Source: Paragordius varius
Taxonomy: Eukaryota > Animalia > Nematomorpha
Assembly (NCBI GenBank): GCA_964247055.1
Contig: OZ176059.1
Coordinates: 620,001 to 684,000 of the forward strand
Direction of reading: 5' to 3'
DNA length: 64,000 nucleotides
Shown: piece by piece, positions 24,764 through 51,500 of the stretch
Layout: every line of letters starts with the position of its first letter
Position numbering within the stretch: the stretch's first letter is position 1
The notes under the pieces: generated by a model
Databases searched by the model: none
The model's input: the letters and a program-made list of their open reading frames with translations, nothing else
Told to the model about the DNA's origin: nothing
Position numbers and translations under genes: made by a program

Positions 24764-24811
24764 ATGAAAATACGGATATCGATATTGACGCTAATCTATT
24801 GTCATCTCTTG
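24764..24811 (+). CDS. HSPG2: Perlecan exon 1 (signal peptide [16 protein letters not shown])
   Basis: ATG 24764; donor TTG|GTATAT, phase 0; completed by IILA in exon 2. Confidence 0.8.
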
Positions 24812-27800
24812 GTATATTTATGATTACTTTACTTAATTTTTATCTGTTAATTTAATAAAAAAAATAGCTCTTTGGTGTATTTTGTACTTAGATGGTTAAT
24901 TAATAATGATATAAATTTATGTTTGTCAAACTAGATCATTTTGGCGAAAAAGCATAGGAAATCTAAACAAGCAAAACTAAAACAATTTATAAGTTTTGAC
25001 GATGAGGATATTACAGGGTCCGGTGAGGGAAGTGGTATCATTCTTTCCAAGGAATATGAACAAAGGGATTTTGGTATTTTATAAATTTATTATTTATGGA
25101 TTTAAAATAAATTAGAAAGCTATTTTAATTTCTTTCAACCATTTAGCTATGGGTCTTGGCGTTTTTTGCCTTTTATTCTTAGTTTAAGCACCTTCGGTTA
25201 TAAGTATGCTGAATCTTGGGGCAACAATTATTATAATATAACCTTGTTTAATCATGGCCATTTATAATAACAAAATATAGTTAACCATTCTTGAACCGAT
25301 TATTTATCGATGTTTTTCCTTTTTAAGGTTAGATAAGAAAATTTATAAATAAATATCCATCTTTATGTAATTTTTATACCATATGTTTTTGGATGTAAAT
25401 TTATATATTAAATTTTGAGAATATATAACTATTTTTTATATTTATACAAAAAGTACATTTAGGGTGGTCTTTGAGCAGAAAACGGTGAATTAAATATATT
25501 CAATAAAAATTGATTATAAGTATATATTTTGTTTTGATTAAAAAAAAGGAATAAATTACTTGACCGGTAGGTCACTTTTTTCCGTCAAAAATTCCATAAA
25601 ATTTGACATAAGTAAAACTGATAATGATTTTTTTTAAATAAACGGCGAATATAAATTAATTAGATCCGACTAGTCATCATGCGCTTTTAGTTTTTTTTAA
25701 TAATGGCCCTGATTTTTAAGTGTCATTCTTTCGTGTTATAGAACCCTAACAATAAGCAAAAATTAAACCAAAGTTAAATTTAATCATTTGATTGGTTTTG
25801 TCAAATATCGTACAATATTTTTATTATTATTATTATATTAAATTAATAATAGATTCTAAAATATTAATCCAAAACAAATTATATATTTGTTTTTTAATAA
25901 ACTAATTGTCACGCCCAAAGTAGGTTAGGTCAATAAAATATTTCTGCCGTAAACGAATGGCTTAAAAGACTGATCTAAATGATAAAATTTACAACCCAAA
26001 TATATTAATACTAGTTCAGCCTTTACTATTTCTCTATTATGCAGATGTAGATTTGGCCATATTAATTTCGCAACCTTTATACTAACCCAAATGTTAATTT
26101 AGGTGAATTATAAATGCAAACGTTTTTCAAAACTTATATGAAACGGTTATGTGATTTGTGTTTTTTAAACCTGTAAAAATTATTCGACTATGATCGGCAC
26201 AATAAAAGGAGTGTAAATGTCCGAAATGGAATTTAAGGTATATACGCTTTCCGGCATATCGCTTTAAAGTAAAAACTTGCAATTTTGAGGCGTATTTTAC
26301 TAAGAATGGAGCTTAACGCAGTGATTACTTTGGAGAAAGTGCTTGACCTACGAATTAAAAGAAATATTTGGGATCATGATTAATTTATGTTCTGATTTTA
26401 AAACGTTTTAAAAATTTTGGGTTGATAGTTTTTTGCGAAAAATGTAGATCATGGTGGGGCTGAACACAGGGCAAAAAATGGTTCCACCGTGATTGCCACA
26501 TTTCTAAATGATTAAAAAATATTCACTTAAATCGTTTATTATCCCCTGAGTTGCTTTAAAAATACAATTTTCCGGCTTGGATAATTTTTTTTTACATTGA
26601 GAGAGAGGATGGATTTTATAATTGGTTTGAAGATGACGAGCCCTAAGTTATACCGTACAAAAAAATAGCAAGAAAGCTTTTTTTTGAATTCTCTCAAAAG
26701 CTATTGCTTGGCATAAATATGTTAATAAAAATTTTTGGCCGAGAAAAATGAACACAAATTATATAACCCATAATAATATAACACAGGTTAATGTTGGTGA
26801 AAAAATTTGATGCCAAAACTGTACCCTGTGAAATTTTATTTTTTCATCATTGTTTATGAGGGATTATTCGATTATTTCAGTTTATAATTGTAGAATTTGA
26901 TTTTATATATAGATTTAATAAACTATGTATGAAAATCCAATTTCAGCAGTAATAGATTGCACAGAAAAGTCACAACAGCGCCTTTACATTTTCGATTTAT
27001 AGTTAAAATATTTATTCACGTAAAAAAACAATATTACAGACGATTAAACATTCAAATGAAATCAAACCTGAATTAAATAATTTTTGACTCTTTTACCGTA
27101 CAAACGGTTTAAATAATCATAAAAAATAATTTAATTTTGACCAATTTCGATAATATTATACATCTGATCACTTTTGAATACGCTAGAATTTGGCAGAACC
27201 GGTTAAAATTTTTTAAAGAATGGGATGACGAAATCACTTTTAAAAATGTTTGAAACAAACAGCTAAAAAACAATAATTACCATAGATCCGATGTCAAAAT
27301 ATCTTTAAATGGATTTAAAGTTGATTAAATTTCTAATGATATGTTTTATACCAGTTCTAGTGATTTGAAAAAAAATCTAAAAAATTATTTGCTAAAAGTC
27401 AAAGTAAACAATTTATAGTTTAGAATGCGCCTATAATTCCATGAAATGCGTATATTGTAATTTATCCCAACATTATGATTATTAAGATGTGTAAAAATCG
27501 CTCTGAAATAAAAAGTCACCGGAAGGTGGTAAAGAGTTAAATTATCATAACATTTTTTTCACATTTTAATTTTTTAAAATAATTTGTCCATTTTACAACT
27601 ATCCATTAAGAATATAATAATTTTTGGGGAATGTTACACACATACAGCATTTTTAAAATCTTAAAAAATACGGATGATATTGGACTAACTTTAATATATG
27701 CATTCTATGACCTTTTAATCGTTCTTTTCTTTAAATTTTATTATTAAATAATTTGTAGATCTCTGAAACTTTTTGCCGCCAAATAATTTAGGTCGCTAAT

Positions 27801-30800
27801 ATAAGTTGCAAAGAAATATTGATTATTGAAAAAAAATTTAAATAACAATGAGTTTTTTTATGATTTTTAAGTCAGCTGTTTGTGGATATATAAAATTTAT
27901 ATTTTAGATTGAAAGTCATAAAATGTCAATATAAAGCCATTTTTTCTTAAAATATATATTTATTGTTGGGTAAAAATAATTAATAATTTAACAAAAATAC
28001 ATTCGGAGAAAAAATATGCATTAAAATGTAATTTTATCAAAATAATTCCATATCTATTGTGTAGAATCAAAACTGATCACTCTGTATATAAAAATATATT
28101 AATTACTTTAAGATTGAGTGCAAAAATCAATTTTAATAATTACGCTTCATACCTACCCAAATCGAGCCTCGATTCACTTTTGATTTTTATGAAATCGGAA
28201 TGTTAGTTGCTTCTAGATAAAAATTTAACAAACGACAATTTGGTTTTTGGACCCAAAATTAAATATTTGATTAATATTAAATTTATATACAAATTTATAT
28301 GCATATATAGCAATTTATCGTTGTAAAATATTGCTGGAATCCGTTCGGTATCACATGAATTATGGCGATAAAACGACCACCGAATTCCAAGAACTTGCAA
28401 ATGGATTAATTTTGGCATTCTATGATTTGTTTCCTGGAGACTGGCACGATAATATGAAAATAGCCGTTGTTCAAATCAGGTATGATAGGGAGCTAAATGC
28501 TTAAAGAGTTTTTTTCTAATATGTAGATATTTTGATTTTGGTTAAAGGTTTACGCCAATGATGTTTTAGCATTACTGAGCGTGTGCACAACATATGTCAT
28601 TTATCTATAAATATTTGGAAATTCCTTAGTTTATTAAAGTTGCATCATTGGGGCATTCTATAACATATCGCTACATCATAGCTATTTTTCTAACATAGAC
28701 TAAAGAAACAATAAAATTGTAAAATTTGACTCGGAAATGCGATTTTTTGCTTAATTCTTGTGAATACTTCCAAAAACTTTCATGAAAATATAAAGCTTAT
28801 ATTAATTGCGTTTATGACATACATTAACAAATAAAATTTAGCTGACAGGTTTTCTTTTATCGCATTTTTTTATTAGACCAATATGCGATAAAATGCGATT
28901 TGTTGATTTTGATTAATGTCAAAAAATTAAAATAACCTTTTTTGGTATTTAACTAAATAAACATTTATTTTTGAAAAACCTTTCTGTCGCATACTGTTGT
29001 CGTCAGCCTCATATGTTATAATATTGCAAGCTTCAGCTATTGTTACAGAATTTAAGTTTTTATAAAGTACCCCAATTACTTTATATATATCTTTCAAATG
29101 TATGTCGCGCATATCATTGGGTCATAAAACGAGACAAGAACTTTTAAACAGGTTTTTTTGGCTAATAAAATCTAATATAATAGTATTTGGATTGTAAATT
29201 GTAAATTTTTTATTAAATTTTCCCATATTGGTATTAATATTTAATTAAAACTAATAGAGCCAATTTCAACCTCAATTTTATTTTGCATGCTTGAAAAACG
29301 AATATACTTTATTCATAAATTCGTATATTTACCTTTATGTTCACCTTTAAACGCTATTTTCTCCTTTCAAAGGAGGTAAGTGTGTTATAGTTTTTCATTT
29401 GTTCCAGTCTTTTGCTTGTTCGATTTTGACATTGAGAAAATTTAGTTCTTCTTGAATAGTGGATTGCCAGGTTTTATAAGTTCTACTTTTATTGTTTTTA
29501 TTATTAGTTGAGTAAGACAGTATACGCTTTATCCAGTTTGTGTCTTGAGCTCTGTGGATGTGACCAGCTCAACGCAAACGGTATTCACGGATAGCTGTTT
29601 TAATTGGTTTACTTTTTAAAGTTTGATAGGGGCAAAATTTGGCTTGGAAATTTTAGATGTTAGGGTTATGTGCGAAAAGAATGGCGTTTAGGATTTTTTG
29701 CTCACCCTTTTCCAGTGATAGTAGATTTGTTTAGTCATAGGCCATGTTTCCGTACCATATAGTATAGCAGGACGTATAGCCGGCATAAAAATTTATGCCT
29801 TTGAACTGAGTAAAACGTATTTATTATTAACGAGTACTTTGACACTTTTCCCAGCCGGCTATGATTCTATTCGATAAGACCGATTCTATACCACGACCAG
29901 CATCTAAAGTATCACATAGTTATATAAATTCGTCTACAAATTCGAATAAAGTGGTAGACTCGAGGCGAGGAGATCCTATGGTTATTGTGTTTGTTGTATT
30001 GGACGGGGAGCAGATAAAGTTTTTATCATTTAAACTTTTTAAAGCGGAGCATTTTTATGTTCCCACTTTGAACATTTGTTACACTTTATTGAATTTGACG
30101 TTATAATTAATGAGCACACGGGGCCATTTTATTGTCTTGTTTTCATTGGACATTAGTTTGGTTTCAGATGTATTCACTTTTAGACTGAATTAACTTAGGG
30201 TCCTTCTATAATATTAAGTCATTAGCGTACAAAAGTTTAAAATGTAAGCCTTTTTGGATGTCTTTTGTGATCTCCTCCATAATTAGGATGAATAAAAGGG
30301 GACTCAGTACAGAGCCTTGGTCTAGGCCGTTTTCAAGTGGGATGGGGTTCGTATCGCCAACGCTTGTACGGATTCAGGAGTTCGTATATAGTGCTTCTAT
30401 TATTTGTGTCATATTATCCTCTATACCTTGCCTTCTGAGCGACCATGCAATAAGGTGTTGCGGGACTGAGTCGAAAGCCTGTTCCATGTCTACGAACGCA
30501 TAGTGGAGAAGGAGATTTCTCAAATATTGCATCTATAGTACCCTTGTTTTCTGAAAATCCAAATTGCATAGAATCTATGCTGCAGTGTCGACCTGATGGC
30601 TATCAGATTTTCAAATTCGTATATTGAATGAAAAAATTTATTGGAATACTTATATATTTTGAATACAGATTTAATGATCCTTTTCAATTATATTACAGTA
30701 TGCATTTATATGGTGGCTTATTTCACACCATAGTTGGCCAATTTGCAACACAGGAGTGTATGGAAAAAGAGGAAATAATTATTTATTCGACATTTTCTTG

Positions 30801-33800
30801 TTTAACCTATAAACTAATGTGTTGCAAATTGCCCTACTATAGTGTGAAATAAGCAACCATTAAAATGCATACTGTAAATATTAGAGATTAATCCATTTTT
30901 AATAATAGGTCATGCTATTGGTGAATTATTATAATTTAAATAGTCGATTATTTTAATATTATCCATAAATTATAACACAGGTCGTCAAAATTCCGAAATT
31001 TACATTTTTTTACATTTTTGGTTAGATACTTTTATTATATTGTTATGACCAAATTAATTTATAAAATATTTCAAACGAATTTTTTAATGTAATCAAACCA
31101 CTGTTATTCTTAGGCCCAATGCTGATGTAAAAACAAGTGTATTGTTAGACTTTGCCCTTTCCAAACAGATTAATTTGGTTGAAATGGAACAAATGTTTAC
31201 GTTTGCTGTCAAAACTGGTCGAATCGGAAAGTATGAAATTAACAAAGAAGAATATAGCTTCAGTGCCTTAACTCCCAAAAGTAAATTAATTAATCCACAT
31301 TATTATAAAAATATATTTAAATATTCACAAACATATATTAAACCATGTATATAATAGTAACGCTAATCGGACTATTTTATATAAAGATAAGGACAAATTT
31401 TATTAATTATATTAAAATATTCTATTCGCTATTGATTTCAGGGAATGCAATGTTAATAAAGTTTTAACAAGAATTTCTTTAGGTAAAACAAAAAATTATC
31501 AAATTTATGAAAATTTTTATTAAAATAGAAACAAAATTCTAACATATTATTATTATGAAAATCTAAAAATGTTTGCTTAGATTTAAATATATAGCTACTA
31601 TTGCAACAGTTCATACCTCTTAGGGTAATTTTATACTCCAGGGCCATTTAAAATTTATTATGTAAAACTTTTTAGCATTGGGCCAAATTTAAAAATGATT
31701 TTTTTGCCTTTTAGGCGCTTAATACAAAATTAATTTTTTAAATAAAGATAAATTAAAATAAATGTGTATTATGTAGAAAAATATAAATAATTTACAAAAA
31801 GCTTTCAAATTACATTGACACTTATTGATTTTAACATCAGCTGTTCTTTTTATGTTTTGAGGCTATCTGATTTTGGGATCCAAAAAATTAAAAACTCAGA
31901 AAATTAAAAGTTCATTTATCTATTACAGGTGAACCGGGTTAGATATTTTAACCAAAACAACTTTTTAAAAAATATAATCTTTACTACTTTAAGCTTTCTG
32001 GGGTTAAAAACTGTATCAAAATGTCATCGCGTATAAAAAATGAAAATGTAATGAAGAGTTGAAACTAGTTAAAATGAGTCAGTATATAAAGCATAAGTTA
32101 TGCTAAAATTCTGTTATAAATATTAATGTAATGTGCACGATTATTACGAATACAGGCCGTACCGTAAAACAAGAAACCGAAATTCACTAACTATAATTTC
32201 AAAATAATTTGAGCCGTATATTCTGTTAATATAATTTTTGAATAATATTTTCAAAATATTTCCAAACTGAGGTTATAGCAGTTAATACAATTCTACTCGC
32301 CCTCTAAATTCGGTTAGCGGCAAAATCTTATGAAAATATGTATTAAATACCGATTGTAATTACACATTTATCCCTCGTTGGTCTAATATAATGAATGCTT
32401 AATAAATTGAAACTTATTCCTCGGCCATTATCAACTTAGATAATTACCATTAAATTAATTTATCTAAAAACTTTTTAGAAACTCACTATAATTATTTTTA
32501 CTAGTGGCATCATAACAATCTCTAGTTTGCTTTAATAAATTTTATCTATCTTAGCAGCCCGTATAATATAATTTGCAACATACCGATAAAGTATTGGAAA
32601 ACATTTTTTAATTAGTTGCTGAAGGTATCTATTTTATACCGTTACAACCAATAAAGCTTTAAAATACGTTAACAAAATTCGATTATGAAATCTAAAGTTT
32701 GAAATATTGGAAAGTTAGCTATTGAAAATTTGAAATAATAAATTTATTGGAACAGGACACAGCTTTGTTTTCATATAATTTCTTAAATAAATACACACAC
32801 ACATACCTACATATTTAAATTTATATATATAGGCTAATTTTGCGATTTTTATTAACAAATGTAGCCCCTAAAATTAAATTTAAAGCTTAAATGTTAACAT
32901 GGCATATTTAAAAATTCGAACAGAAAAAACCAGTGTTTATGTTTAAATTTCGTAATTTTCATTTAATATTAAAACTCCTTTTATACCATAATGGCAAAGT
33001 TAGATGTTAGGGTTAGATATGTAGAAGTCCCAAGTCAAAAAGTTGTACAGTGCTAACAAGCATTTGTTGTGCAATTACTATTGACGAATGGTTTCTCACA
33101 CTAATTTACATTTTCACTTAGTTTTTTTTTTTAAAACAATATCACGGACTCAAAAATTTATTTAAAAAATTGATTTGCCAAGAATTTATTTTTTCGTTTT
33201 TATTAACTTTTTCCAGGACCATATATACCATTTACAGTTCAAATTCACCCTTAAATTTAAATTCACCCTTAAACAATTCAAATACACCCTTAAACAATTC
33301 AAATTCACCTTCGAACAATTCAAATTCACCCTCAAATAAATAACATGTTTTTTAAGATTAAAAATTACCTATATTTTAATATATTTTTAAAAAATAAAAT
33401 TTTGTTTTAAATTAAAATAATACTGAAAAAATAATTAATTATGCCATAAAGATATATTTTATAATAATAATGAGTTTTATTAGTTCGAAAACATATAATT
33501 TATTTTTAGGGTGAATTTGAATTGTTCGAGGGTGAATTTGAATTGTTCAAGGGTGAATTTAAACTGTAAATGGTATATATATATATATATATATATAAAA
33601 GGAGTGATTATAAATTCAACTAGTTTTGTAAAAGGAAAATTGTTAAAAGGGATGCATTATATTCTAATTTATATAAAAAGTAATATTCAAATATTTTTTA
33701 TAATCTATATCTATATATTTATAAAAATGGAAAGTGGTGGCTTTGTAATCTGTTTCCGGAAAACCGGTAGACCCATTCAAATCCTAATGTCAAAATATAA

Positions 33801-36800
33801 TCATTGATGAATGCCCCGACAATAGCTTCACCCTTTTTTAAATTTGGTCCCCAGTTCTGGCCAATCCCGTGTAAAAATCGGTTTTTTAAAAAAAATTTAC
33901 AAAAATCGTGTCTTTGAAACAATTTTTCGGATAACGTGTTGGACCCTTCGATTTCAAATATGATTTTTTATACTTTTTTTCAATTGCGCTGAACATAGTC
34001 GGCTCGCTTTTTTAATTTAGGCCCACTTACCCGTTCCCCCCGTAAAATGCCATTTTTTCAAAAAAACAAATTCCACAAAAATAATTTTTTGAATCTATTT
34101 TTCGCCCAAGGTATGAGACCGTCAAAATTTAATGAGGATTTCAGGTATTTCCTGTTCGAAGGCTAAAACTTCGGTCGTGCTTTTTTTTATATTGACTGCT
34201 GGATAAGGCGAGACCCGCTAAAAACTGCCCCGTCATATCGAAATAGTGTGCCTTTGGAGCTAAATTTCAGAAAACCTATCTAGCCATATGAGTTCAATAG
34301 GCGCCTAAAATATTACCCGTAACAAGGCAAAAATTTATGCATGCGGTTATTTAAAATTAACCGTTTATTAGGGCCCTTCACGCCCTGAAAAATGCGCCAC
34401 CATAGAATGATTTTTCAGTTTAGAGGCAATTTTTCCAAAAACTAATGAGAGCATATGGAATCAATCATGATTCCAGGTATTATCCGTAAAAAGGCAAATA
34501 TTTTAATCGCTTTTTTCGTATCAGCCTCTGGGTAGGGAGCTACCCGCCTAAAACTCCGCCATCATATCAAAGTTGCGTTGATTAGGAGTTAATTTTCAAA
34601 AATCTTATCAGGCCATAGAAGTGTAACGAGGGCCTGAATTATTACCCGTAAATAAGCAAAAACTTAAGTCGAGCGGTTTTTTTAAAATAAGCCGTCAATT
34701 AGGCCCTTTATGCCCTAAAAAATGGGCTATCATTCAACTTTTATTTAGTTTTGAAGACAATCTTCCAAAAACTATTAAGAACATATGGAATTAATGATGA
34801 TTCCAAGATTCCCCTAAAACGGCAAAAACTTTTATTGAACGTCATTTTTATATTGGCCTCTGGGTGGGCTACCCGCCTACAACTGCGCCACCATATCGAT
34901 ACAGCATGCCTTTGGATCCAAATTTCAGTAAACCTATGAGTTTAATGCGATATTCCCCATATAAAGACAAAGATTTTGCACGCTTTTTTTATACCTACCC
35001 CTGGGTAAGGAGCTACCCGCTGCGCCAAACTATATAGAAATTGCGTTTGTTGGAGCTAATTTACAGAAAATTTATGAAGCCATACAAGTTCAGTTTAACA
35101 CATTTCTGGGGAATTTGTATATCATTTTTTCCTTTAAAAGGGGACCACAAATGAGTTACTGTTTATATCCCTTGATCCCTTTGAATACAATTTCAAAATA
35201 AAACTTTTAACCATGATTTCATAAAACGAAAATCTCAAATTAATTCCAATGATAGTTAAATATTAACCTTAATAAGGGACAGTTTAAATATGGTCAATTT
35301 CGAGTAAACAATATTTGAGCCTAAGCAAAAACCCGTAAAAGAAAAACTAAAGACATTTTTATTAAGTATGTTTTTTATTTTGTCTCCATTACCTCGATTT
35401 ATTGCAAATTATTAAGAATAGTTATCGGTGAGACTACACAGCGAAGCGTGACAGGGCCAGTTAAGTGATTTAATATTAATTTAAAACATTTATTTTCAGA
35501 GAAGAAATCCCTAATATAAAAATAATATATTACAATAAAAAATAAAAAGGAATTGGTTGGATTGTTTTAAACCCTTTCTATACATAATATAACATATTAT
35601 AATTTAAGTGGGCTAATTATTGTCATATTTTTACCATTCCCACCCTATTATTAGGGTAGGTATACACGGTTAAAATTTATATAGGTAGTTTGTATCAATT
35701 TATTTAATTACCGGGTTAATTATTAGGTTATGAGGTTACTTTTATTAATTTTTATGATCCATCCTAATTAGCCCACAAATCTATTTTAAGCCGCTAAGCT
35801 TCCAATTAAACCGTGTTAAATTTTACCTTATTAACAAATTAATAAATGGTTCCAGCTAGATGTGAACCAAATTCAAAATTAAGCTTAACACAATTGTTAC
35901 AATAAAGAATACATTTTAATTTTAATTATGCCTCTTTTAATATATGAGTATCTGGAGTTAATTTTGATTATTAATATTATTATTATTATTATTATTATGT
36001 AAATAGCATAGTAGCAATCTAACATCAAGGTTATTTGATTTAATTTAATGTTTAAATTAAATTTAAATAAATGGTTTTAAAATATTTAATTATATTTATT
36101 ACTATTCACATACATTTATTCTTTAATTTTTAAAAAATTTTGCCTAGCTTTTTACATAATTAACACTTATCTGCATACCCCCGGCCAACTTTAAATTGAT
36201 ACTATTTAAAAAACTATACCAAAAAAGTGGTCCCAATTTAGACTTTTGCCAAAACATTATTCAAAATTTTGTCCGTATAAGATTTTCCCTACTAAAAGCT
36301 TACAAAACCGATTATTAATATTAGATTACACAAGTTCACCATTTTTAAGAAAAAGTTGTACTGACATCATAATAATGTTTTTTAATTATATACTAAGTTA
36401 ATGTGTACTGTTTAGGTGTTGTTTACATGTTTTTACAAATTACAGTATGAGTAAGTATACATTGCTAGAAAGTTATTAATTAATGCCAAAAAGTAAAGAA
36501 AACTAAAGGCAGTATAATTGGCTAATACTAGTAAAATGTGAAAAAAATAATTATAGGCCAATAATACTGCCCTTTGTTATATTTACTATTTGGCAATAAT
36601 TAATGACTTTCTAGCAATGTTCATTTACTCATACTGTACTATGTGGGCAATTAGTAGGATTTAAAGAAAGAAATTTATATTTATTATTAATAAAGTTCAG
36701 CATCTCAATAAACGGTTTTGCAAATAATATATATATATATCTGATAAATTACGCAAATTTTTTTGCATAATATTGTCAATTATAACTATAAAAAATCTCG

Positions 36801-39800
36801 TAAAACGATTCCTGTATTTGTATGGCTTATATGGGTGTAAAATATGGCCTTAGTTTTCAAAGATTCGAAATTCGCTGTTTCTCATAATTTTTTTGTATGT
36901 TAATTTAACAAACGTTTTTTCACAAATTAGTCCCTATTTTGATTTTAAAAATGGCATATCTCCAGTCATATTTTTATCGATAAATTTTAATTTCATATAA
37001 TTTAATCCAATATTTGTAATTTAATTACTCGTATAAGATTGAAAATAATGTCATTCTCTTTTTAAGATATGATGAAAAAATATTTTTACATATAGAATCA
37101 TGCATGTGATAGCTTGTATTCTCTAAGGGAAAACATTATATATCTACACTATGTTGAGATTTCTTTCTATTTTATTTTGGTAAAGAATTTTGTTTATCAA
37201 TTCAATATATATTTTATATTTCGTTTGAGAAAAGCCAAATTAAACAGTACTTAGGGTCAAGTCTCAATAATACTTTGGATTCAGTACGACTATTAGCGTA
37301 AATATTACCAATCAAAATTTTAAGAAATCCTAAATATTAGAATTATACTGCCAACTTTTAAGATTAAATTCATATTGTTAAATCAAAAAAAATTGATTGT
37401 GTTAGGATAAAGTAATAAAGCAAACAGATAAATATCAATACGTTTAATAATTTATATACTGGTTAAATAAATCATTTTTGAGGTAATTGTTTCAATATTA
37501 GTATTTTTTATGCGGATAATATTACAATGCATATTAAATTAACTAATAACATATTTATGTTTAATGTAGATAATATATATAAATATTATTCTTAACCTTA
37601 AATTTTTTTCATGCTCAATGTATAATGCATGTAAATTAAAACTAATGGTCTGAAAAAATTATTGTTTAAATTATTTTTCCCACAATCTAATTTTAAATTA
37701 TGAATGGTTTTTTTTATTTCTTTACAAATTTTACTGGTTTTGCTTACAGTTATATAGTTATTAAAATCAATATTAGTCAACTAACCAATATAGCATTTAT
37801 TAATTTTTTTAAATCATTTTTTTATAAAGATATAGGCAGCTAAATGGATTAGTTGTTCAAATAATGTGGATTTTATCTCATTTTTTATATTTATTTATAA
37901 AATATTAATTCAAAATTAGTTTGTGTTATTATACTTATCTTGTTTTTAGATGGTTATGATGTGTGTAGGCTTTTTTTTCTCTGAAACTAAATTAACAGTT
38001 AAATGTTCAACCGTTATATAAGTTTTATACATATATAGTGGACATATTCGAATATTATCCCAATTTTACGACAATTATATGGTACGCTCTCCTCTATCAT
38101 TTAAACAATATTTAAATTGCTATTTATCATCACATTTTATTATGGGTTGTGAAGAATTCTCTAAAATATCCCTAAATTAATATATATATTTATATATGCT
38201 TTATTCATAAATATTAATGCTTTCTATACTCTCAAATTACCATAACACGATTTAATATAAATGGGATACTAATACATAAAATCGAATCGAATCGATCACA
38301 ATATTAAAATAACTGAAACAAACAATAATAATAATATTGATTGCATACATGCGTTACTAATTTGTTCTTTGTAAATTAATATAAATATACACTAGAGAGA
38401 AGGTGCGGATTTAAATTAACTTATCTAAAAGTGTGCCATAAAGGGCAACAAAAAAAAGCTTTGGGTTTAATCATTGTGCTAAATTTTCTCATAAAGATAA
38501 TAACTACCTTAAGTCAAAATTATGTACGCCACTACATACGTATTACTAAAAATAACTACAATCTACAATTCAGTTAATATGAAATCGTTCCTATACCAAT
38601 GAAATCCCACATTCATAATGTATATATTGTATATGTATAGTGTGTATGTATAGTTATATACTTACATGCATGCATTTTCACATTCCTAACAAAATTCCCA
38701 CACAACCCTTGGAGAAATAATGTACAAATAGATTATCAGCCCCCCCTTTTCCCCTAATTATTCGCGTAAAATTTGTTTTAATTACGTAATTACCTCATTA
38801 ACGGATATTATATTAAACAAGTAAAGTATGTTACATGGAGTTGATTGGAACAATAAAACTAATTAATTCATGATTCATTTTTGTTATTATGTGTGAGACG
38901 TGAAAATTCCATCATTTTCTATATCAAATATATTTGCGTTAACAACTGATTCGGAAAATTTTGTTACCAAAATAATATTCAAGATTACACATTCGTATTA
39001 TTGTACGACTTAGTTCTATACATAACATATATGGCGCTATCAAAGTTGAGAAAATTTGGTAGTATTAAAGTTTTTCCAAAGGCTAACATTTTTTGTTTCA
39101 TTATATCGACATTCTCATGTATGATCATATTACCATCCTGTCAAAGTAAATTTTATACCAATAATGGCATTGTTGTGGACAATAATATTAAGACTCTACA
39201 GTCATCCTTAAACCATACAAATGATATAGGCCTAAATAACCTGCATCACATTTTAATTGATGGTACGAAATATAAAAAACCTGTGACCGACGAAATATAT
39301 ACCGCTGACTCACACCGTATGAATACATTAGTTAATCGTAGGATATTTCCTTATTCCATGTATCGTTATATGATAGTGGCTAATAAACGACGTCAAAGAA
39401 AGTCAAACACACCCATAGTGCTCGGTTCTAAATTTAAGATGTCGTACCATCGTGGTGACAGCAAGGATAAAAATGTTCATCGAAACAAGACAAAAAGAAG
39501 AAAATATTATAAATTACGATATGATCAACCAATTAGAAGAAATCATAAAAAATGGCATACAAATAATCTGAAATCCGTCATCCTCACCAATCATACTATA
39601 TCAAAACCATCCAAAATCAAAACTAATAACTTTATTTTACGCCACAATATAATAGTTATGGATATTGGCACCCATAACTCTATGGGTGATAATGACAAAG
39701 AAATTGAGGCACTTGCTAAACACATTTCACTCTTTGACAATTTTTATCATTCAACACCCTTAAACACCAATGATAAAAATGGAAGAAGGAAATGGAAAAG

Positions 39801-41036
39801 CCATGGTATTAATCATAAAACTCTATTTAAGCAAAATTTTCCAGGTAAAGATAAAAATAATAAATCACAATTTAACAGCAATAACTATAACAGCCCAAAT
39901 AATGTGTTGTATGCCTTGCAGTTTAAATCAAACAATTATATACCGGCCCAGTTCACAAATAATGATGTTGTTGAAATAAAAAACAGTAATACCACCGTAT
40001 TAAGTGGTAGGAATGTACAGGAAACATTGCATCTACGAAAACACCAAGATTATTCTTCTTCTTTTTCCTCTCGAATTCCAACAACATATGGAGATGGAGA
40101 TAAAAATGGGATGAGATATTATGGTAGGAAAAAGGTTGAATCCATTTTGCCTTACATAGCACACCATGGCAAAACTAACATGAATAAAAATGATAAATTT
40201 TTAGTATACCATGACGACATAACATTCAAACTACCAAATGTTTCAAACACACGCACTGATAAAAAGCGTAATATGTTACTAAAGTTTTTAGCATTAACAC
40301 CACCAACAACATCAGTTAAAGCCTCCCACCTCAAGCATTTAAATAATCAAACAGCCAAAGACATTAGCGAAAGAAATGATAAAATTTACCGAGACCCAAA
40401 ATTATCAGTAATAAATACACTATTCCATATCCATCCTTCTAATAACGTTAGAAAAAAACTCAGAATAAGTAAGCGTTCATTGCGATACCCTTACAGTTCA
40501 TTAATTATATCACCGTATGAGAAACGTGAAATTAAAGCTTGTCCTACAGGTCAATTCCCTTGCCCGGGGAATCGACGTTGCGTGCCCTGGGAGTATCGTT
40601 GTGATGGTATAATTCATTGCGAAGATTATGCCGATGAATTGGGATGCCGTAAGCAAGCCTATATGCCAGATATATATCATTTACATCTCTCAACAATTAA
40701 AATTCACCCTAAAATAAATTATTTGTTTTAAAATTACCTGTATTTTTATATATTTTAAAAAATGAAATGTTTAAATTAAAATAATATTAAAAAAATTCAA
40801 CTATGCCAGATTTTTAGATGAGATATATTAGCCCGAAAACACAATTTATTTTTAGGGTGAATTTGGATTGTTGAAGGGGGAATTTGAGTTATAAATGATA
40901 TATATATTGACTCTTTAGTAAAAATAATTTGAATAAAATTATTAGCCCACATACAAATAATAATGGGGGCAAGTTTGAGCATTTGATTGAGCAAATGCCC
41001 AATCAAGATATTATATGTAGGGAAAGGGAGGGGGTA

Positions 41037-41075
<39 letters not shown>

Positions 41076-44000
41076 GGAAGATTGAATACCTATGTTATCA
41101 TAATTATATTTAAAGATAATTTTTTTCTAAAATCTTTTAATTTTTAAAGGGTTGTCAATTTTATAATTTGTTTAGTTATCTAATCATATTTTTATTTTGC
41201 GGTTCACACATTCAATAGGTAATATTTTAGTTTAGTTCCTTTCGGGGATATAGTTATTGTCCGATAAATTTTTCGCAAATTTTTTTTTAAAAAAGATGGC
41301 TATAGGCTGTATAATATATTGTGTGTGATAATATGACATCATATAGATAAAAATATTTTTTAGCAACTTAATAATAATAATAATATAAAAATGTTAGGAT
41401 AGAAACATACACATACACATCTTCTTAATATTTCAAATTTACATTTTTATTGAATTTTGTGTATACTAACTCACTTACTTACTTTAGTTTAACATTGATG
41501 AATCCGTGCTAGGAATATGGTTTTATCTAATTTATAAAGGATAAATATTAAATATACTATATCATTTCTCTCAAACAACCTGATGCCTATTTACAGCCAT
41601 CATATAAAAATGATTTTTTATACTCATTTTTTTGGTATGACGCAATGGCATATATACTGTATAGACAAATTTCGTTGCCAATATTCATTTATTTTATCAT
41701 ATCTATTTTTAACTATTAAGAGAAAACAAACTTGGGGTAATTGTTATAAAAATGATTTTTAAAAGATTTTTCGAGAATGTATATATGCGTTTTAAGTTTG
41801 TACAGATTTGAAAAAAATACTAAATAATTGAATATATTTAACATTTTCTGGATATTATAATTTTGTTTTAAGTCAAAAATTTTCGGTTCCATATTAATCT
41901 TTTTTGCGGAACTACGGTTTAAAAAATATTTTTATTAATTAGTTTTTTATAATTATTTTTCGGGACGGTTTAAGCCTAAGCCCTATTTATTTATATATAT
42001 AACAAATTTTTTAATATTTATATATGGTTATAAATTTGTCACGTTATCCATGCCCCTTAGTTGATGAAATGAAAACGAAAACCAGCGAATGAAAACAAAT
42101 AATTAGTGCAAAAATTATTTTTTTTAAAAAAATTCCATTAAACTGGAACAGCTTATTTGTGGAAAATAGTTATTCTCGAAAAATATTTCATGAAAATGAA
42201 ACGGTCTAATATAATCGTTCCATCATAATCATTATTTATTGGATTGCAAATTACTTTGGTTTAATATTATCTTTAAAACTAAAATAATAAGTGATTTTGT
42301 AAAATAAAACTTTAACTAAGTTTCCCTTTTCCCCAACATATTCCGGATAAAGTCAATATAATAGGTTTATAAATTAAAAAAGGGTCTGGGAATGCTATAT
42401 ATAATATGTATATATAGCAAGTATAATTATACGGGACTTTAATAACTCCATATATCATTGCCAATCCTATTTGTAATATATATATATATATATATAATAC
42501 ATATATATAATCATATAAAATGGGAAAACGGGTTTCGAATTGCCAAATTGGGTGTAAACATGTAACATGAGACACAAATCTAAATAATTTGTTTTATGAT
42601 AATTTTTTTTGATATGCTGTATAAATATGACATGGTTGAAATTATTTTTGTAAAATAATTCCAATTTTTTTAAAACTAAAATAAGATATATAATAAACTT
42701 CTTTTTCTGTGTAAATAAAATTATATTGAAACAATATATTGTAATTAAATTTTTTTGTTCAAAAACATTGAAAATATTAATTTTATGGGGTGATCTACGT
42801 ATGATAAAAATTGATAAAAAATTATTTATTTCACTAATCATGATAAAAAGCCAAACTTTTAAATTTTTAATATATATCATATATTATACTGAATGACGGT
42901 TTTACTTAATGAATCACTTAATAAGCGAATTCATAAATTATACAGTCGTTTGATAATATATTAAATAATTTATTAAATTAACGGCTTCTTTTTACTTACG
43001 CTAGTTATAGTTATATACTTGCATCAATATATAAAAAATAATATAATATATTTTACTTATCTTTTCTATTTACGGTTTGTAGCTCAACCTGTTATATGTG
43101 GAACGAATGAATTTCGTTGCACCAATGGACAATGTATCCCCTATTCCCTTAAATGTAATCAAATCTATGATTGTGTTGATCGTTCCGATGAAACTAATTG
43201 CCTTACAGGTAAATTTAAAACTATCATTGTCGGAAAAATAAAATAGCTCCTTTAAAAAAGAGAAAATATATTGTTAAAAAATATTTTAATATAGTTTCAT
43301 TAAATTTATTTTGACTTTTAAGTGTGTTAACCAAAAACGCCATCTTTTGACCTGAAATTTTATTAAAAGCAATATATTTTTTTATTCAATACATAGCTAG
43401 TATATACTGGAAAAAATTTTTAGTATATACTAGCTTTTATTCAGCAGGCCCACTCCTAAAATGATAATAAACCATAATATTTCAAATTTGATCACTAGTT
43501 TTTGAATTATCCTTATTTATCCTTAATTTTAACGTTTTGCCCGATTTCGATTTTCTCTCAATATTTCAAAAACTACGTTGTCAACAAATAAAAATTTTTG
43601 TGGCAAATGAATACGCTGGTCATAAGCTATCTCATGAAAAAAAATTTTTTCGTTTAAATTTTTTTGAACACAGTGTATATATATTTATATATTATATATA
43701 GATGAACCAAGATCCATATATTATTCAAGTACTGGTTCTCATACCCTTTCGCCATGGAAATCAACGGCCCGCACAGAGGACATGACAACAAGTTAAAATT
43801 GTTTTAAATCGTTGATTTTAATTTAAATAATATTTGAGATTTTTAAATTATATCATATGTTTTGGTTTAGAAAAAATTGATTAATTATAACGTAAAAAAA
43901 ATAAAACACGATTTATGAGGAAAGATATCCATCGATCACAAACAAAAAATTTATCAATATAGAAAGATTTGTAAAAACTGGAGTTAAACCGTAATGATTC

Positions 44001-47000
44001 TATAATATACATTAAAATAAGCGATTTAGGTATTTTATAGTTAAATTTTATCTTATTACACACATGTTGCATTTAAATAAATTTCTGATATCCCAATAAA
44101 GTTTTTTGCCGTAATATACTTTGTTTATATCATAATACATGTATGAATATATACCATTTACGATTCAAATTCACACCCTTAAACAATTCAAATTCACCCT
44201 CGAACACTCGAACAATATAAATTCACCCTCAAAATATATGATTTTTAGGATTAAAAATTACCTATATTATTACATATTTTTAAAAATAAAAAATATGTTT
44301 TAAATTAAAAATCACTGAAAAAATAATAAACTATGCGATAAAGATATATTTCATATCAATAATGTTAAATTAGTTCGAAAACACATAATTTATTTTTAGG
44401 GTGAATTTGAATTTTTAAAGGGTGATTTGAACTGTAAGTGGTATATATGTGTGCCTTATAAAATAATTGATATTTTTACATAAAACGAGTCCGCTTCTTA
44501 CTCTTGATAACAAAACCATACCGGTGTCATTTAGCACGGTTGATTTACACTTAACTAAACTTTTTCATCTTCAATACTGAAGGTAGCGGAATCGAAAAAG
44601 AGTATCTCTAATTATTTTTCACATCTTGAATTATTAATTTGGCTGTCATCGTCATTTATGGTCGAAAGCCAGCTTTTAAGGCGTTGTTATGGAATCGATA
44701 TCATTATTTGAATATATTTCTTTCAATATTTTTTTCTTAGTAATACGTTTATTATAATACTAAATAATTTATTTCCATTTATTGGCCTGTATTTTTTTAA
44801 CTGATATTTGCAGAATTATTTATATTAATATATTAAACAGAAATTTGTTATTCCCTTTTTTCCATACCACAGATTTCGAAGAGGATATCATTAAAAATGA
44901 TCTTGGTTTCAATGATAATGATATGGACACACTAAAACCCTTTGAATATCTTGGATTAGATTCAGTGAGCAGTCAAACAGGAGCGCCTTGGAAACGTACC
45001 CCTTCTGTTGGTAAAATAAAACACACCATTATAAATATTATTTATTTCAGTAGAAATGATATAACCATTCCTTTAAATGATAATAATTTTTTTTGGAGAA
45101 CACTTATAGAGATTGATTAAATTAAATTTCAATTTTATACGTATTTTAATATATTTAACTACTTTTTCGTCAAATAATCTCTGCTTCAGATATGGGTGGA
45201 CAACAAATCTTCGAAGGGGAAACACAAAATCAACACCGGGTCAGGCTACATGATTTAACTAGCCAATCTAGTTATGCCAATTATCCTGGTACAACTCCAA
45301 CATTTTTTCCACAAACAAGCGGTGAACGGACACTGGGTAGTACCAATAATTACGAATCTGAAACAACAAGGTATCAAGATTTAATTGGCGGCACACCTCA
45401 TAACACAATGAATTATCAATTTTCAACACATGATTCTACCATGTCACCAATACTATCATCAACGGATAAATTATTGCCTTCAATCTCAACCATTGATTAC
45501 GAGGATCATGATAATATCTTATCATCAACGTTACCCGATAATGCTAATATGATAGACAACACTTTAATGACATCAACTCTGCAACACAGGGCAGCATACC
45601 ACGAACAAGATGGTGTCAAACATTTGATGGGTGCCATCAATACAAACCGACCTGAAATACGGAGTACAACGATAGAAGGTATATATAAATATTACTTAAA
45701 AATCTTTCATTTAATCACCACATTTTTTCATTTCACACTTTATCATTCAATCTTTACCTTTTCATCGAAAGCTAAACTATAACGCTCAGCATTTTATATA
45801 AACACATTTTTTTAAATTTAAATTGGTTATTTAAATTTTGGGCGCATTTTATATAATTTTACAAAAAAACAATATCCGTAATGATAAAACCAAAAATAAA
45901 GAAAAACATGAAAGTTAAATGACTACCAGTCCTGAATGTTGAATCTAAAGTTTTATTGTTGTTATGGCAAAGATCGTTGTGAATTATATATTTTTTTAAA
46001 TTTGATGCATTTTTATTGTTAGGTCAACTACTAATATATTTATAATATCCTATTTGGTCGGTTGTTAATCTAGCCCAGTGATAATTAAGAAAAAAGGGCC
46101 AAAAATATTTTTCTTGTCCAAAAGCCATAATACCGATATTTCATAGCCACATTTGGACATATTTATACTCCAATATTTACATAAAATATATTAGTAGTTT
46201 AAGGCCATAAAAAAGCATTTTTAAGCGCATGCAGCTCGTGCCGGGGTTTGAGTATGACGAAGTTATATTGGTTAAATAAGGGATATTAGTTATATGTTTG
46301 AATGAAAAAAATGTTTCATATATGTTAAAATTTATCGTATTCAAATTATATAAATTTTATGTTAGATGATAGCCTTGATGTTGATGTTGTATTAAGACCA
46401 ACTTACCTTGAAATCCCATTCCAGGGTTCAGGCATTTTCGAAGTACATAAATTTATATCCATTAATTTTACATAAAATTAATTTAATTTTATAGTGTAAA
46501 TCTTTGACTATTGTAACTTTTATTCCCCAATTTTTATATAATTTATTTATAAGCAAGTTAAAAATTTTTTGATAAAATGAACTTATTGCTCGTTCAGGAT
46601 TTAATCAATGCATTCATACTTTGTCTTACACTTAAACTAATATAAATTATATTGGTGTGGTAGTAAATATTACTTTGAATAAATTATTATAATAACCGAC
46701 ACATATAAAAGTATGTGTAAAATACATTGCTAGGTTTTTCTTATTAATTAGTGCCAGATAGCATATACGGCAAAGGGCATCATTATTAGTTAATAGCGGT
46801 GAAAAGCGTTGGAAAAATAATTACAGGCCAATAATATTGCCCTTTGCTTTGTATGCTATCTGGCAATGATTAATTACTAATCTATATATCTATTACGTAT
46901 ATATATAATATTCTCAACTAAGGTTTTTATACGGTATCGCAATGTACCCCAACATGAATATGATCGTACCTACTATGAAAGTATTGAATGGAAACGTGGT

Positions 47001-47619: not shown

Positions 47620-48524
47620 AATGCAGCAACGTAGGACAATAGATAGGTTTAAGCAACATTTTATAAATTTACATAATATGAATGTTAAACGTTTTTAGTG
47701 CAACAACATCATCATCAAATTACGACTACTATACCATCTCCACCAGTAATACAAAGAACTACACCAGCAAATACCCTCACACCCCCACCACAAGAGGATT
47801 ACTACAAATTTCAACATTATCCAACACGCCATCCCACTCATATTGATCTGGCTGTGGCCCCTGCTTCTGCCAGGCAATCTACGAGACCAGAGATTACCAA
47901 TGAATCCCATCAAAGCCATAACGCAAGTTCATCCGTTCTAACGTCTTACTATGCTGAATACCATAGCAGAAGGCGACAACATGAAGAGGAAGAAAATCGT
48001 AGAAAAATCCTTTCTGACATGAATGCAAGACGGGTTCAACAAGAGGCTCATGCATATTCGCATCAATTACTATCGCAACAATCTAGGTATGTATTATTAA
48101 CTAACTAACTACACATATACCATTTACAATTCAAATTCACCTTTAAACAATTCAAATTCACCCTTGAACTATTCAAATTCACCCTTGAACAATTCAAATT
48201 CATTCTCGAACAATTCAAATTTACCCTAAAAATAAATTATGAAATTTCGGTCTAATATAACTCATCATTATTATTAAATATATTTTTATGGCAAAGTTTA
48301 TTATTTTTTCAGTATTATTTTGATTACATACAAAGTTTCTTTTTTTAAAATAAAAATATAGGTAATTTTTAATCGTAAATTAAACACATAATTTATTTTA
48401 TGGTGAATTTGAATTGTTCAAGGGTGAACTTGAATTTTTTAAGTGTGAATTTGAACTGTAAATGGTATATAATCAAACTTATTGGCATAGATAAGATACG
48501 ATTCTAGAAATGTGATATATTATA

Positions 48525-48590
<66 letters not shown>

Positions 48591-51500
48591 GCACAATGTG
48601 CTTTATTGAATTTCTCTTGCTATATATATATATAACAGACATAATGTCCAACCGCATCATGGCGCGTTTATTAATGTAAGCAACATATACACAAGTCCAC
48701 AACCACCTCGGGTAATTACTCAACATATTATAAGGAAGATTATTGATAGCCGATACTTGAAATTACATGTAGAACCTGCCCATGCCACAGTCATTATGGT
48801 AATCTATATATAAAATGTTTGATAAACGATGGGGAAAACATTCACATATTCAATGAAATATAATTTAGGCAAACAACGCTTCCAATTGCTTAATTTTTTT
48901 ACCAATTTCAAATTATAACCAATAATATTTTGTTTATTGTATATGCGTAATATTTATTAGATTTTAAATGATAAATATTTTTTCAATAGTATTAACTGAT
49001 CAAATATATTCTTTTGTATGAATTACAAATTCACATTAATAAAAGTTGTTAAATCCGTAATATAATGTGATAAACGAAAATTAAATGGAAAGTTAATTGA
49101 AATTATATATTTATAAACTGAAACTATAAATAACATATGTTGTTTCTATTTGTTTTAAATATAAAATAATAAAATTTTATTGAATTAACAAATTAAAAAT
49201 ACTAATATTACAATACTACTTATTTCCAATCCACAAAAGTGATCATCTTAAAAAGGAAATTCCCCTTTTGTGGATTAGGAACTAGAAGTAGTATTATAAT
49301 CGTACTATTTTATATTTGCTCTTTATAAAGTCATAATTTCATATCATATTCATTTTAATCCAAGGGACAAGGTATTAGGTACATATGTCGCCTGTTTGAT
49401 CAATCACCCCAAAGTACTATGAATGACAATGTACAGCCATCAACATTACCGCTACCTCAAATCGATTGGATACGGCTTAGTGGAGGGAATTCGCGCAATT
49501 TAACCTTACCTTGGCCAAGGGCCCGAGTACAATATGAACATAGTAGTAGTCACAGCGACAGCGATGTAAATAGGGAGCGATCAATCCAAGCTACACTTAT
49601 GATATTACCCGTCCTAGAATCTGATCAAGGGCATTACGGATGTGTTTTGCGTCAAACAGCTGCACAAAGTGGTGGCCACCAACAATCATATGATAGGGCA
49701 CTCAGGGCTGTCGTTACATTACGTGTTAATCCGACCACCCACACTAATGTACAACAAAGGAATCAAATTCTTCAACATCAAAACTTGGTAACACAAAGAC
49801 AACAAGTAACAAGTCCATCAACGCTTGAAACAATTTCGTCTACACAATCCAACACAAATCGAGGATCGCAAAGACCCTCATTACAAAGACCACACTTTGC
49901 TGCCACTAGGGACCCTAGTAGGAGCGGACTAACCCGTATAACTTCCCCTGTTCCACATCCTCATGTAAAAGTTTTTTTAATGAAATAAAACTTTATTTCA
50001 TAAAAGCTGTATATTTTTGTTTTCTTTGCATATGTGCATGATTTATGGCATATCATTTACAGTGTGAGTAAAAAATACATTGCTAGTTTTTCATTTAATC
50101 TTGGGAGATAGCAAGTAAAACATCTTGTTGGCTCAAAGCAGGAATGTCCAACATGCGGCCCGCGAAAAATTTGGCAGTCCATAATTTGAAAAAATATTGT
50201 CAAAAAATCTTGGCAACATATTTTTTTTCTGAATAAGTTTACAATTGGCAATGGGACTAGAAAGATTGTTATATGTTTTTCTTATCTTGGAAAATTAATA
50301 ATTATTTAATAATGTCCATATATATGTCTTGAATGCGCACGCTAAATTTTTAAGCTAAAAATGCGGCCCGCGAAGCCATTTGTTTTGTACCGCCGCCTAG
50401 CTTAGGGGAAGAAAAAACCAAATCTTAAATTTTATATTATATATGCACCATTGTCATTTATTAAAAATGCTAACTGGCAATAACTTATGGATATATTTTT
50501 ATCTTAAATTACTATGTATGCTGGATTTAGATTCTTCATGGACTAATAGGCGGATCTCACATGCAAATAAAAGATATCCAACGGGGTGATCAATCAATAC
50601 ATGACGATAGAATGGGAAATGGTAATCAATTACCGCAAAGACCATATAATCAGCACATGTTACAAACAACGCCTGTTCCCAGTAATAGCAATATCTCATA
50701 TATGTACATTAGCTAAATTTAACACATATATAGTTGTTAAAATGTGAGTGTTTTCGGTATAGATTAAATGATTTTCTAATCACAAGGGTGCTATTCGATA
50801 GCAACTGTTTTGACTGCTTGTCAGGAAATAAAATATGTAGTGTAGATGATCGTTATGGATTTTTCTTAATTATATTAGTATTAGGGGCAGATTACAAAGA
50901 TTTACAATGGAATAAATTCTGTAAGATCGTGATAAAATTTATGTTAGTTTTCACCAAAACTCTATAATACTCAACATAACGTGTTTCGATTGCATTTTGA
51001 TTACTTCATGGATATAAATTTAAAATTTTTTGTATAACATAAATATTTTAAACTAAAAAAGTACGCAATTATATTATTATTTAATTACAAAATATCTAAG
51101 ATACTTAAAAATATGTTGAGCTTTCACCCAAATGCCACCTGACTACCGAAATTCGTGATAGTAATTATTTATCCAAACACCGAAATATTAATTACACCAC
51201 CCGAAAATTCTCAAATTATACATTATGGGTTAAATAAATATTTATATGTTAATCATTGATTTCGTATAATATTATCAAGATGACTGTTTTATCTTATTTT
51301 TTTAGTATTATTATCGTAAAAACACAAATAAAATTTCAACTCTTTACTTAAACTTATTTCCTTATCGATATGCAGTATAAGTGAGGATACATTGTTGTTT
51401 TATTACAGTTATTGCCGAATGGCACATATAGAAAAAAGAACTATTAATTGCGCTAATTGCAAAAATTCAATAATATCGCCTTTTACATTTATACCAAGGG

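Follow-up and report, generated by a model that had tools for sequence, protein, structure and literature searches.

The perlecan gene of the horsehair worm Paragordius varius raises the question of whether a single locus can encode two different N-termini, one carrying the glycosaminoglycan (GAG)-bearing domain I and one lacking it. The gene lies in a stretch of 64,000 nucleotides (assembly GCA_964247055.1, contig OZ176059.1, positions 620,001 to 684,000 of the forward strand), which was analyzed as a whole and is referred to as the window; all coordinates count from its first base. A first-pass annotation of the window had proposed that a 1.6-kb exon hidden in a large intron provides perlecan with a second, polybasic N-terminus that replaces domain I. 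Of this proposal, a coding exon in perlecan with a signal-like 5' end stood up to analysis, whereas the acceptor of the domain-I-bearing splice junction (31280->40538) turned out to be weak and the suggested release of the basic region by proprotein convertases was not supported. The 1.6-kb frame belongs to perlecan as a true coding exon, and on balance its sequence features favor translation starting at position 39031, as an alternative first coding exon.

A long coding exon ending in LDLa repeat 1

A stop-free frame spans positions 38950–40728 of the + strand and comprises 593 codons, which makes it the longest open run of the window in any of the six frames; the second-longest open run has 345 codons. 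With a per-codon stop probability of 0.075–0.084 (~8%), the chance of finding 593 open codons at the local base composition is ~1e-20 to 1e-22 (the frame has a G + C content of 31% and the window of ~26%). The earliest in-frame ATG is located at 39031, and reading of the sequence found no ATG in any frame from ~38892 to 39030. The 27 open codons ahead of this ATG are compatible with chance (9%); if non-coding, the segment 39031–39147 would be open with P = 0.03 and the segment 38950–39147 with P ~0.003. The frame, its ATG and the hydrophobic segment had been placed at the correct coordinates in the first-pass annotation.

From the ATG onward, the start codon and a signal-like segment (39031–39147, + strand; n-region, hydrophobic run and then the residues QS) are followed by a polybasic low-complexity region of 463 residues (39148–40536, +) and by LDLa repeat 1 with the exon end (40537–40648, +). 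In Pfam, the family Ldl_recept_a (PF00057) matched residues 513–549 of the open reading frame counted from 39001, corresponding to 40537–40647, with an E-value of 6.8e-07, and LDLa modules in the PDB matched residues 503–539 only of the 39031 product. The repeat contains six cysteines and is in frame with, and unspliced from, the polybasic region, as claimed in the first-pass annotation. With the donor GTAAGC at 40649, the last base of the exon is 40648, and this boundary in phase 1 fits the phase-1 acceptor of the next exon at 43083. This following exon (43083–43208, +; phase 1 to phase 1) encodes LDLa repeat 2 (PF00057, E 5.7e-14). A separate observation concerns the calcium cage of LDLa repeat 1, in which, compared with the usual D-x-x-D-C-x-D-x-S-D-E, one Asp is replaced by His and the Ser by Ala; judged from these replacements, calcium binding by this repeat may be altered.

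Residues 1–500 match a single place in the 110.5-Mb genome, namely their own locus. A second sample with the same species label (X3/X4) differs from the reference at ~3.5% of the bases within the frame, and none of the listed differences introduces a stop codon. Within the frame a single indel is listed, a tandem duplication of 6 nt at 39610 by which S-K-I becomes S-K-T-K-I, whereas nine indels, all of 1–2 nt, are listed in the flanking non-coding DNA. To judge from these two sequences, selection has kept the frame open. Outside the LDLa repeat, neither Pfam nor PHROGs placed the frame in a transposon, viral or phage family. Derivation from a transposon or a viral protein, which the first-pass annotation had considered as a possible objection to the exon, is thus countered by the single copy and by the lack of a match to any such family.

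Identity of the gene and its upstream 5' end

Further domains are encoded downstream of the long exon. Together with the repeats at 40537–40647 and 43083–43208, Pfam detected LDLa matches at ~52271, ~55850, and ~56459 (E 7e-07 to 8e-15), which are followed by an I-set immunoglobulin (Ig) domain at 56989–57150 (E 1.2e-07), a Laminin_B domain at 59073–59297 (E 6.7e-06), and EGF_laminin domains at 60985–61143 (E 1.6e-05) and 62334–62513 (E 5.4e-09). The gene thereby shows the tandem LDLa repeats followed by Ig that make up perlecan domain II and the laminin B domain with laminin-type EGF modules of domain III; the Ig array of domain IV and the laminin G/EGF modules of domain V would lie beyond the 3' end of the window. 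Since a Ser-Gly/SEA-like part, LDLa, Ig, and laminin B/EGF occur in the order of domains I, II, and III, the gene is perlecan on the basis of its sequence. It contains other long low-complexity linker exons at 45190–45690, 47699–48087, and 49359–49985.

The domain-I-like part consists of four exons upstream of the long exon, all on the + strand. The first canonical exon (24764–24811) contains an ATG and the first 16 residues of a signal peptide and ends with a phase-0 donor (TTG|GTATAT). The second (24935–25073) completes the signal peptide with IILA and continues with a basic stretch and an acidic run with the candidate GAG attachment site GSGEGSG; its 3' end is uncertain owing to a second phase-1 donor at 25034/25035, and a Pfam search with this exon gave no match. 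The first half of a SEA-like module is encoded at 28311–28479 (acceptor atatatag|C in phase 1, donor CAG|GTATGA in phase 2) and the second half at 31114–31280 (acceptor attcttag|G in phase 2, donor AAAA|GTAAAT in phase 1 at 31280/31281). Each exon was searched singly, so that the SEA assignment rests on half a domain: the exon 28311–28479 matched PF01390 with E 0.0064 and 17.1 bits against a cut-off of 26.4, over profile positions 3–42 of 106, and the exon 31114–31280 alone had no Pfam match. The existence of a separate 5' end at 24764–31280, as described in the first-pass annotation, is thus upheld as far as signal peptide and Ser-Gly site are concerned, though the SEA match is weak. As an observation in its own right, a domain-I-like 5' end is present here in an ecdysozoan, although the perlecans of flies and nematodes have been reported to lack domain I.

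A signal-like start at position 39031

The 39031 product begins with an n-region of 18 residues and a charge of +5, which is followed by an uncharged hydrophobic run of 18 residues (residues 20–37) and then by the small residues QS. The best 19-residue Kyte–Doolittle window in the frame has a value of 1.89 and the best 12-residue mean within the run is 2.46; the frame, very hydrophilic as a whole (grand average of hydropathy, GRAVY, −0.98), has no second hydrophobic window. A heuristic signal test was applied to all Met-started open frames of at least 45 codons in the window, asking for a positively charged n-region and for 12 or more uncharged residues in a row. By this heuristic the 39031 start has a Met, a positive n-region, an uncharged core, and small residues behind it, and it is the strongest of 84 frames, as only three of the other 83 passed the test and each of these is weaker. 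Because the positive charges lie N-terminal of the hydrophobic run, the arrangement suits an N-terminal signal or a type II anchor and is the opposite of a stop-transfer sequence. For the first 39 residues we predict the role of a signal peptide or, if cleavage does not take place, of a signal anchor. This N-terminal signal anatomy at the 5' end of the exon argues for a start at 39031 and hence for an N-terminus devoid of domain I.

According to the favored explanation, transcripts containing the 5' end of the exon would be translated from the ATG at 39031, and the first 39 residues would then serve as signal peptide or uncleaved anchor. The basic arm of 463 residues would continue unspliced into LDLa repeat 1 and from there into the rest of perlecan, and the GSGEGSG site and the SEA-like module of the four upstream exons would be missing from this form. 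It would require a promoter or another kind of transcript 5' end near 38.9–39.0 kb. From the sequence features described, we infer this promoter, the use of the start codon, the signal function, and the coexistence with a domain-I-bearing form. A short leader (39014–39030, +) lies between the ATG and gacttag|T (phase 1), the best of the acceptor-like sites upstream; this leader could be 5' untranslated region, or coding if the SEA exon is spliced to that site.

Splice sites and alternative explanations

Splice acceptors were scored with a matrix derived from 18 training acceptors of the window, 13 of which are of the TTAG type; the leave-one-out scores of these sites range from −1.3 to 8.7, and the matrix discriminates poorly. 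For the canonical junction 31280->40538, which the first-pass annotation had assumed for the domain-I form, the phases agree but the acceptor (attaaag|C) scores −2.9, which is below all 18 training sites and at the 15th percentile of the AGs in the window. Given this weak score from a small matrix, the classical SEA–LDLa1 junction cannot be taken for granted. The phase arithmetic on which the earlier comparison of the acceptors at 38984, 39014, and 40538 was built is correct. Elsewhere in the gene, an acceptor situated one residue before the first LDLa cysteine recurs at 52271 (ttttag|A); the site at 40538 is odd in its sequence, not in its position.

The weak acceptor at 40538 is one of several observations that speak against a domain-I-less form starting at 39031 beside a domain-I-bearing one. 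The acceptor at 39014 scores 3.5, which is inside the training range, and it has the phase of the SEA-exon donor (the site at 38984 scores 2.0). AGs of the same phase within the exon score even higher (40292, gtttttag|C, 7.4; 40160, 5.7; 39845, 5.2). The ATG at 39031 has a poor context with T at −3, the DNA of the hydrophobic run is pyrimidine-rich and could be read as a polypyrimidine tract, and the signal-peptide test applied is a crude heuristic and not SignalP. Of the nine sequencing runs listed, four contain the stretch and cover introns as well as exons, and these runs are therefore DNA; the runs guessed to be RNA contain none of the stretch, the LDLa part included, and one of them, X5, gave only two matches of 19–24 letters. 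Finally, 5 of the 19 substitutions listed after the ATG in the second sample are synonymous and 14 non-synonymous, which, with 20% synonymous sites, corresponds to a ratio of non-synonymous to synonymous differences per site (pN/pS) of ~0.7. By this comparison the amino acid sequence appears barely constrained and its substitutions nearly neutral.

The alternative that best survives these observations, unlikely but far from negligible, is that the frame is an internal cassette or extended exon. The SEA donor at 31280 would then be joined to 39014 or 38984, placing 1.6 kb between SEA and LDLa1 of one perlecan, in which the hydrophobic segment would be tolerated. Both acceptors are in phase 1 like the SEA donor, the site at 39014 is of the common TTAG type and clearly outscores 40538, and the gene contains other long low-complexity linker exons. 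Phase agreement alone, however, has a one-in-three chance, and a signal-like segment directly after the first ATG of a frame is rarely encountered by chance. In addition, the hydrophobic run would tend to anchor the chain and thereby misplace the domains behind it, since such a segment inside a secreted, disulfide-rich protein would leave the LDLa, Ig, and laminin domains stranded in the cytosol.

A further, improbable explanation is partial inclusion, in which the true 5' boundary of the exon would be an acceptor within the frame and the signal-like start would be intron sequence left open by accident. Candidate boundaries in the phase of the SEA donor are 40292, 40160, and 39845, all of which outscore 39014; 39147 and 39202 are in another phase and would need an undetected upstream exon, and the pyrimidine-rich DNA of the hydrophobic run indeed ends in caaag|T at 39146/39147. 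Against this stands the requirement that hundreds of codons would have remained open without selection, for which the probability, ~0.003 for 38950–39147 as given above, becomes far lower for 1 kb. The second individual moreover keeps the frame over 39221–39865 with only the 6-nt indel, and the acceptor scores come from a matrix whose 18 sites provide poor discrimination.

Similarly little probability attaches to the existence of two genes, where the Ser-Gly/SEA exons would form a separate gene for a small secreted proteoglycan ending at ~31352 and perlecan would always start at 39031. The sole acceptor for the classical SEA–LDLa1 junction is very weak, the frame of the SEA exon continues for 24 codons past its donor to a stop at 31352, and precedents exist in the perlecans of flies and nematodes, reported to be without domain I, and in Trichoplax perl, which is transcribed as two genes (PMC4398486, PMC8405445). 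On the other hand, the same strand, the order Ser-Gly–SEA–LDLa, the matching phases, and the good GTAAAT donor at 31281 are the pattern of a single perlecan gene, and no sign of a polyadenylation site or a terminal exon was seen. Last, it is very improbable that the exon is non-working, whether it is a relic, a frame that stems from a transposon or virus, or an error of the assembly, because the near-neutral substitutions, the lack of detectable relatives, and the adjoining mobile elements are outweighed by 593 open codons in single-copy DNA of 31% G + C, the missing match to any transposon, viral, or phage family, the retention of the frame in an independent sample, and its in-frame connection to a real LDLa repeat and donor, past which the nearest mobile element begins only at 40692.

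Composition and processing of the polybasic region

The polybasic region contains 12% Asn, 12% Lys, 7% Arg, and 5% His but only 7% Asp plus Glu. It has an isoelectric point of 10.2, a net charge of ~+53, and a GRAVY of −0.98, and its 463 residues include no cysteine and seven N-glycosylation sequons. All basic motifs quoted in the first-pass annotation are found in the 39031 product. Its suggestion that proprotein convertases release a GAG-less core or cationic peptides, in contrast, was not supported: the RXXR and KR sites exist, but RXXR occurs only twice in the mature region, as often as in shuffled sequences (2.0; P = 0.6), and no site with the furin consensus R-X-K/R-R was found there. 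Dibasic pairs are marginally enriched (21 versus 15.4 expected, P = 0.06) and tribasic runs number 7 versus 2.8 expected (P = 0.03). The basic residues thus appear mildly clustered, and cleavage by convertases is not supported by the sequence.

A high A content of the coding strand (39%) favors Lys, Asn, and Arg codons. Another linker exon of the same gene encodes a segment with an isoelectric point of 11.2, and the canonical mature N-terminus likewise begins with a basic stretch. Because of this A-rich strand and the basic linker elsewhere in the gene, the cationic character of the polybasic region should not be over-read, and may partly reflect composition. The near-neutral substitution pattern is in keeping with a linker-like region that evolves fast and is probably unstructured. 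A single-sequence AlphaFold model had a mean predicted local distance difference test (pLDDT) score of 31 with the LDLa repeat included, and is hence uninformative on order or disorder.

Search for relatives of the polybasic region

A word search with residues 1–500 yielded no relative, and a HMMER search of 1.84 billion cluster representatives with the same residues retrieved nothing beyond one protein, P0001 (E 3e-24). This candidate was rejected: it is 5768 residues long and consists of ~25 tandem repeats, so that one 36-residue stretch was counted 25 times, whereas a single pairwise stretch reaches 33 bits with 13 of 36 residues identical. As the score is inflated by the repeats, the similarity is regarded as a chance match. 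A features search in the ESM Atlas reached a best score of 0.79 (low recognition), and outside the LDLa repeat no match was obtained in Pfam, PHROGs, or the PDB. The statement of the first-pass annotation that the region is not recognizable as a known perlecan module therefore agrees with the lack of relatives among proteins and in Pfam, the Atlas, and the PDB. For calibration, the core exon of a serpin gene from the same window was submitted to the word search and likewise remained without a match. The collection thus seems to contain no close relatives at the level of such fragments, for which reason absence of the long exon from other horsehair worms cannot be read off from these results; it may be conserved among them and invisible to these searches.

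Comparison with known perlecans and other matrix proteoglycans

Domain I of perlecan carries heparan sulfate chains that store growth factors. Like domain I of vertebrate HSPG2, the upstream 5' end of the P. varius gene combines a signal peptide, an acidic Ser-Gly motif, and a putative SEA-type module, followed by LDLa, Ig, and laminin B/EGF domains. It differs from HSPG2 in its weak SEA match, with half a domain per exon, and in the long exon, which is without counterpart in HSPG2. To our knowledge, use of an alternative first coding exon has not been established for the perlecan of vertebrates. Agrin and collagen XVIII are other basement-membrane heparan sulfate proteoglycans, and both have alternative first exons. 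In agrin, a secreted laminin-binding form exists beside a short type II membrane form that uses an uncleaved signal anchor; similarly, the predicted 39031 start, with its short basic N-terminus and ~17–18 hydrophobic residues, could give rise to a secreted or an anchored protein. No sequence relationship to agrin or collagen XVIII is known, however, and the alternative exons of agrin are short, whereas the start described here brings with it a very long basic region that directly adjoins the first domain the forms have in common.

Among perlecans, the closest parallel is Drosophila trol, whose three promoters produce short, intermediate, and long forms with differing N-termini and matrix locations (PMC8405445). 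Some trol forms include an additional exon with heavy glycosylation, and trol has been described as lacking domain I (PMC8405445). As in trol, internal starts would provide one perlecan gene with different N-termini, the use of the start being a prediction in P. varius. In contrast to trol, a domain-I-like 5' end with Ser-Gly site and SEA-like module coexists here with the internal start, and the N-terminus of 463 polybasic residues has no similarity to trol detectable by HMMER. Perlecans without SEA have also been reported for the nematode (UNC-52) and for Nematostella, whereas in Trichoplax SEA is present and the gene is split (PMC4398486). The 39031 start resembles UNC-52 and the cnidarian perlecan in lying directly before LDLa, without SEA or N-terminal GAG sites (PMC4398486), but those perlecans are of that form only, whereas both kinds of 5' end occur in one locus here. 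N-terminal diversity generated by internal promoters is known in this class of proteins. What would be new, if the favored explanation is true, is the occurrence of both 5' ends in one ecdysozoan locus, a very long polybasic arm of orphan sequence, and the fact that this arm is joined directly to LDLa1.

The locus would then also show a route by which domain I can be lost, namely the gain of a promoter and first exon within an intron, and would offer a natural pair of GAG-bearing and GAG-less perlecans for comparison. A bolder view, distinctly unlikely in our estimate, is that the locus represents a living intermediate in the loss of domain I in molting animals, which produces a GAG-less, cationic, and perhaps membrane-tethered perlecan from a new intronic start. 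The ancestral Ser-Gly/SEA exons would persist, while a new start with its own signal anchor would have arisen in the intron and been fused to LDLa1. The polybasic arm could then be a binding partner of matrix or cuticle polyanions, heparan sulfate or others, rather than their carrier. Within a conserved matrix gene, the long exon itself is a clear case of a coding insert that evolves fast and is restricted to its lineage. Gene prediction guided by homology would be likely to overlook an insert of this kind.

Mobile elements, sequence divergence, and neighboring genes

An element of ~215 bp resembling a miniature inverted-repeat transposable element (MITE) lies at 40692–40907 (no strand assigned) in the intron 44 nt past the donor of the long exon and has imperfect terminal inverted repeats of 55 nt. 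In the worm's own genome, at least 83 matches of 74–81% identity, distributed over all large contigs, were listed among 2062 first-look candidates, and the read depth over the element is ~600 times that of single-copy DNA. The element explains the tail of the open frame as well as the high read depth and the many read joints at this position. Joints between 38197 and 40692 had suggested that the frame is deleted in one allele or is part of a mobile element; this candidate was rejected, as other copies of the MITE-like element and AT-rich low-complexity matches account for them. A high-copy dispersed repeat of ~1.0–1.2 kb with internal self-similarity occupies 33900–35100 (no strand assigned) in the large intron, outside the coding unit. 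At least 135 matches of 80–85% identity to it were listed among 2421 first-look candidates in the same genome, and its G + C content of 37% exceeds that of the rest of the large intron.

Over 37400–43350, the second sample (runs X3/X4) differs from run X1 by ~2–4% in coding and non-coding DNA alike and by many small indels. Either the species is very diverse or the two samples belong to cryptic species; a preprint of 2026 (10.64898/2026.02.03.703548) reportedly describes misidentification among horsehair worms.

A search of the whole window against Rfam gave no match. The nematode SL1 spliced-leader family was sought in the genome and gave no match, but control genomes gave none either, so that this result is uninformative. 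On the − strand, an ATG-started open reading frame of 260 codons (3584–4366) is rich in Asn and Lys and has no Pfam family; it is possibly another orphan exon or gene. The serpin gene used for calibration is located at 12316–16637 (+), consists of several exons with an Asn-rich low-complexity insert, and was identified by a match of its first exon to the Pfam family Serpin (E 4.5e-04).

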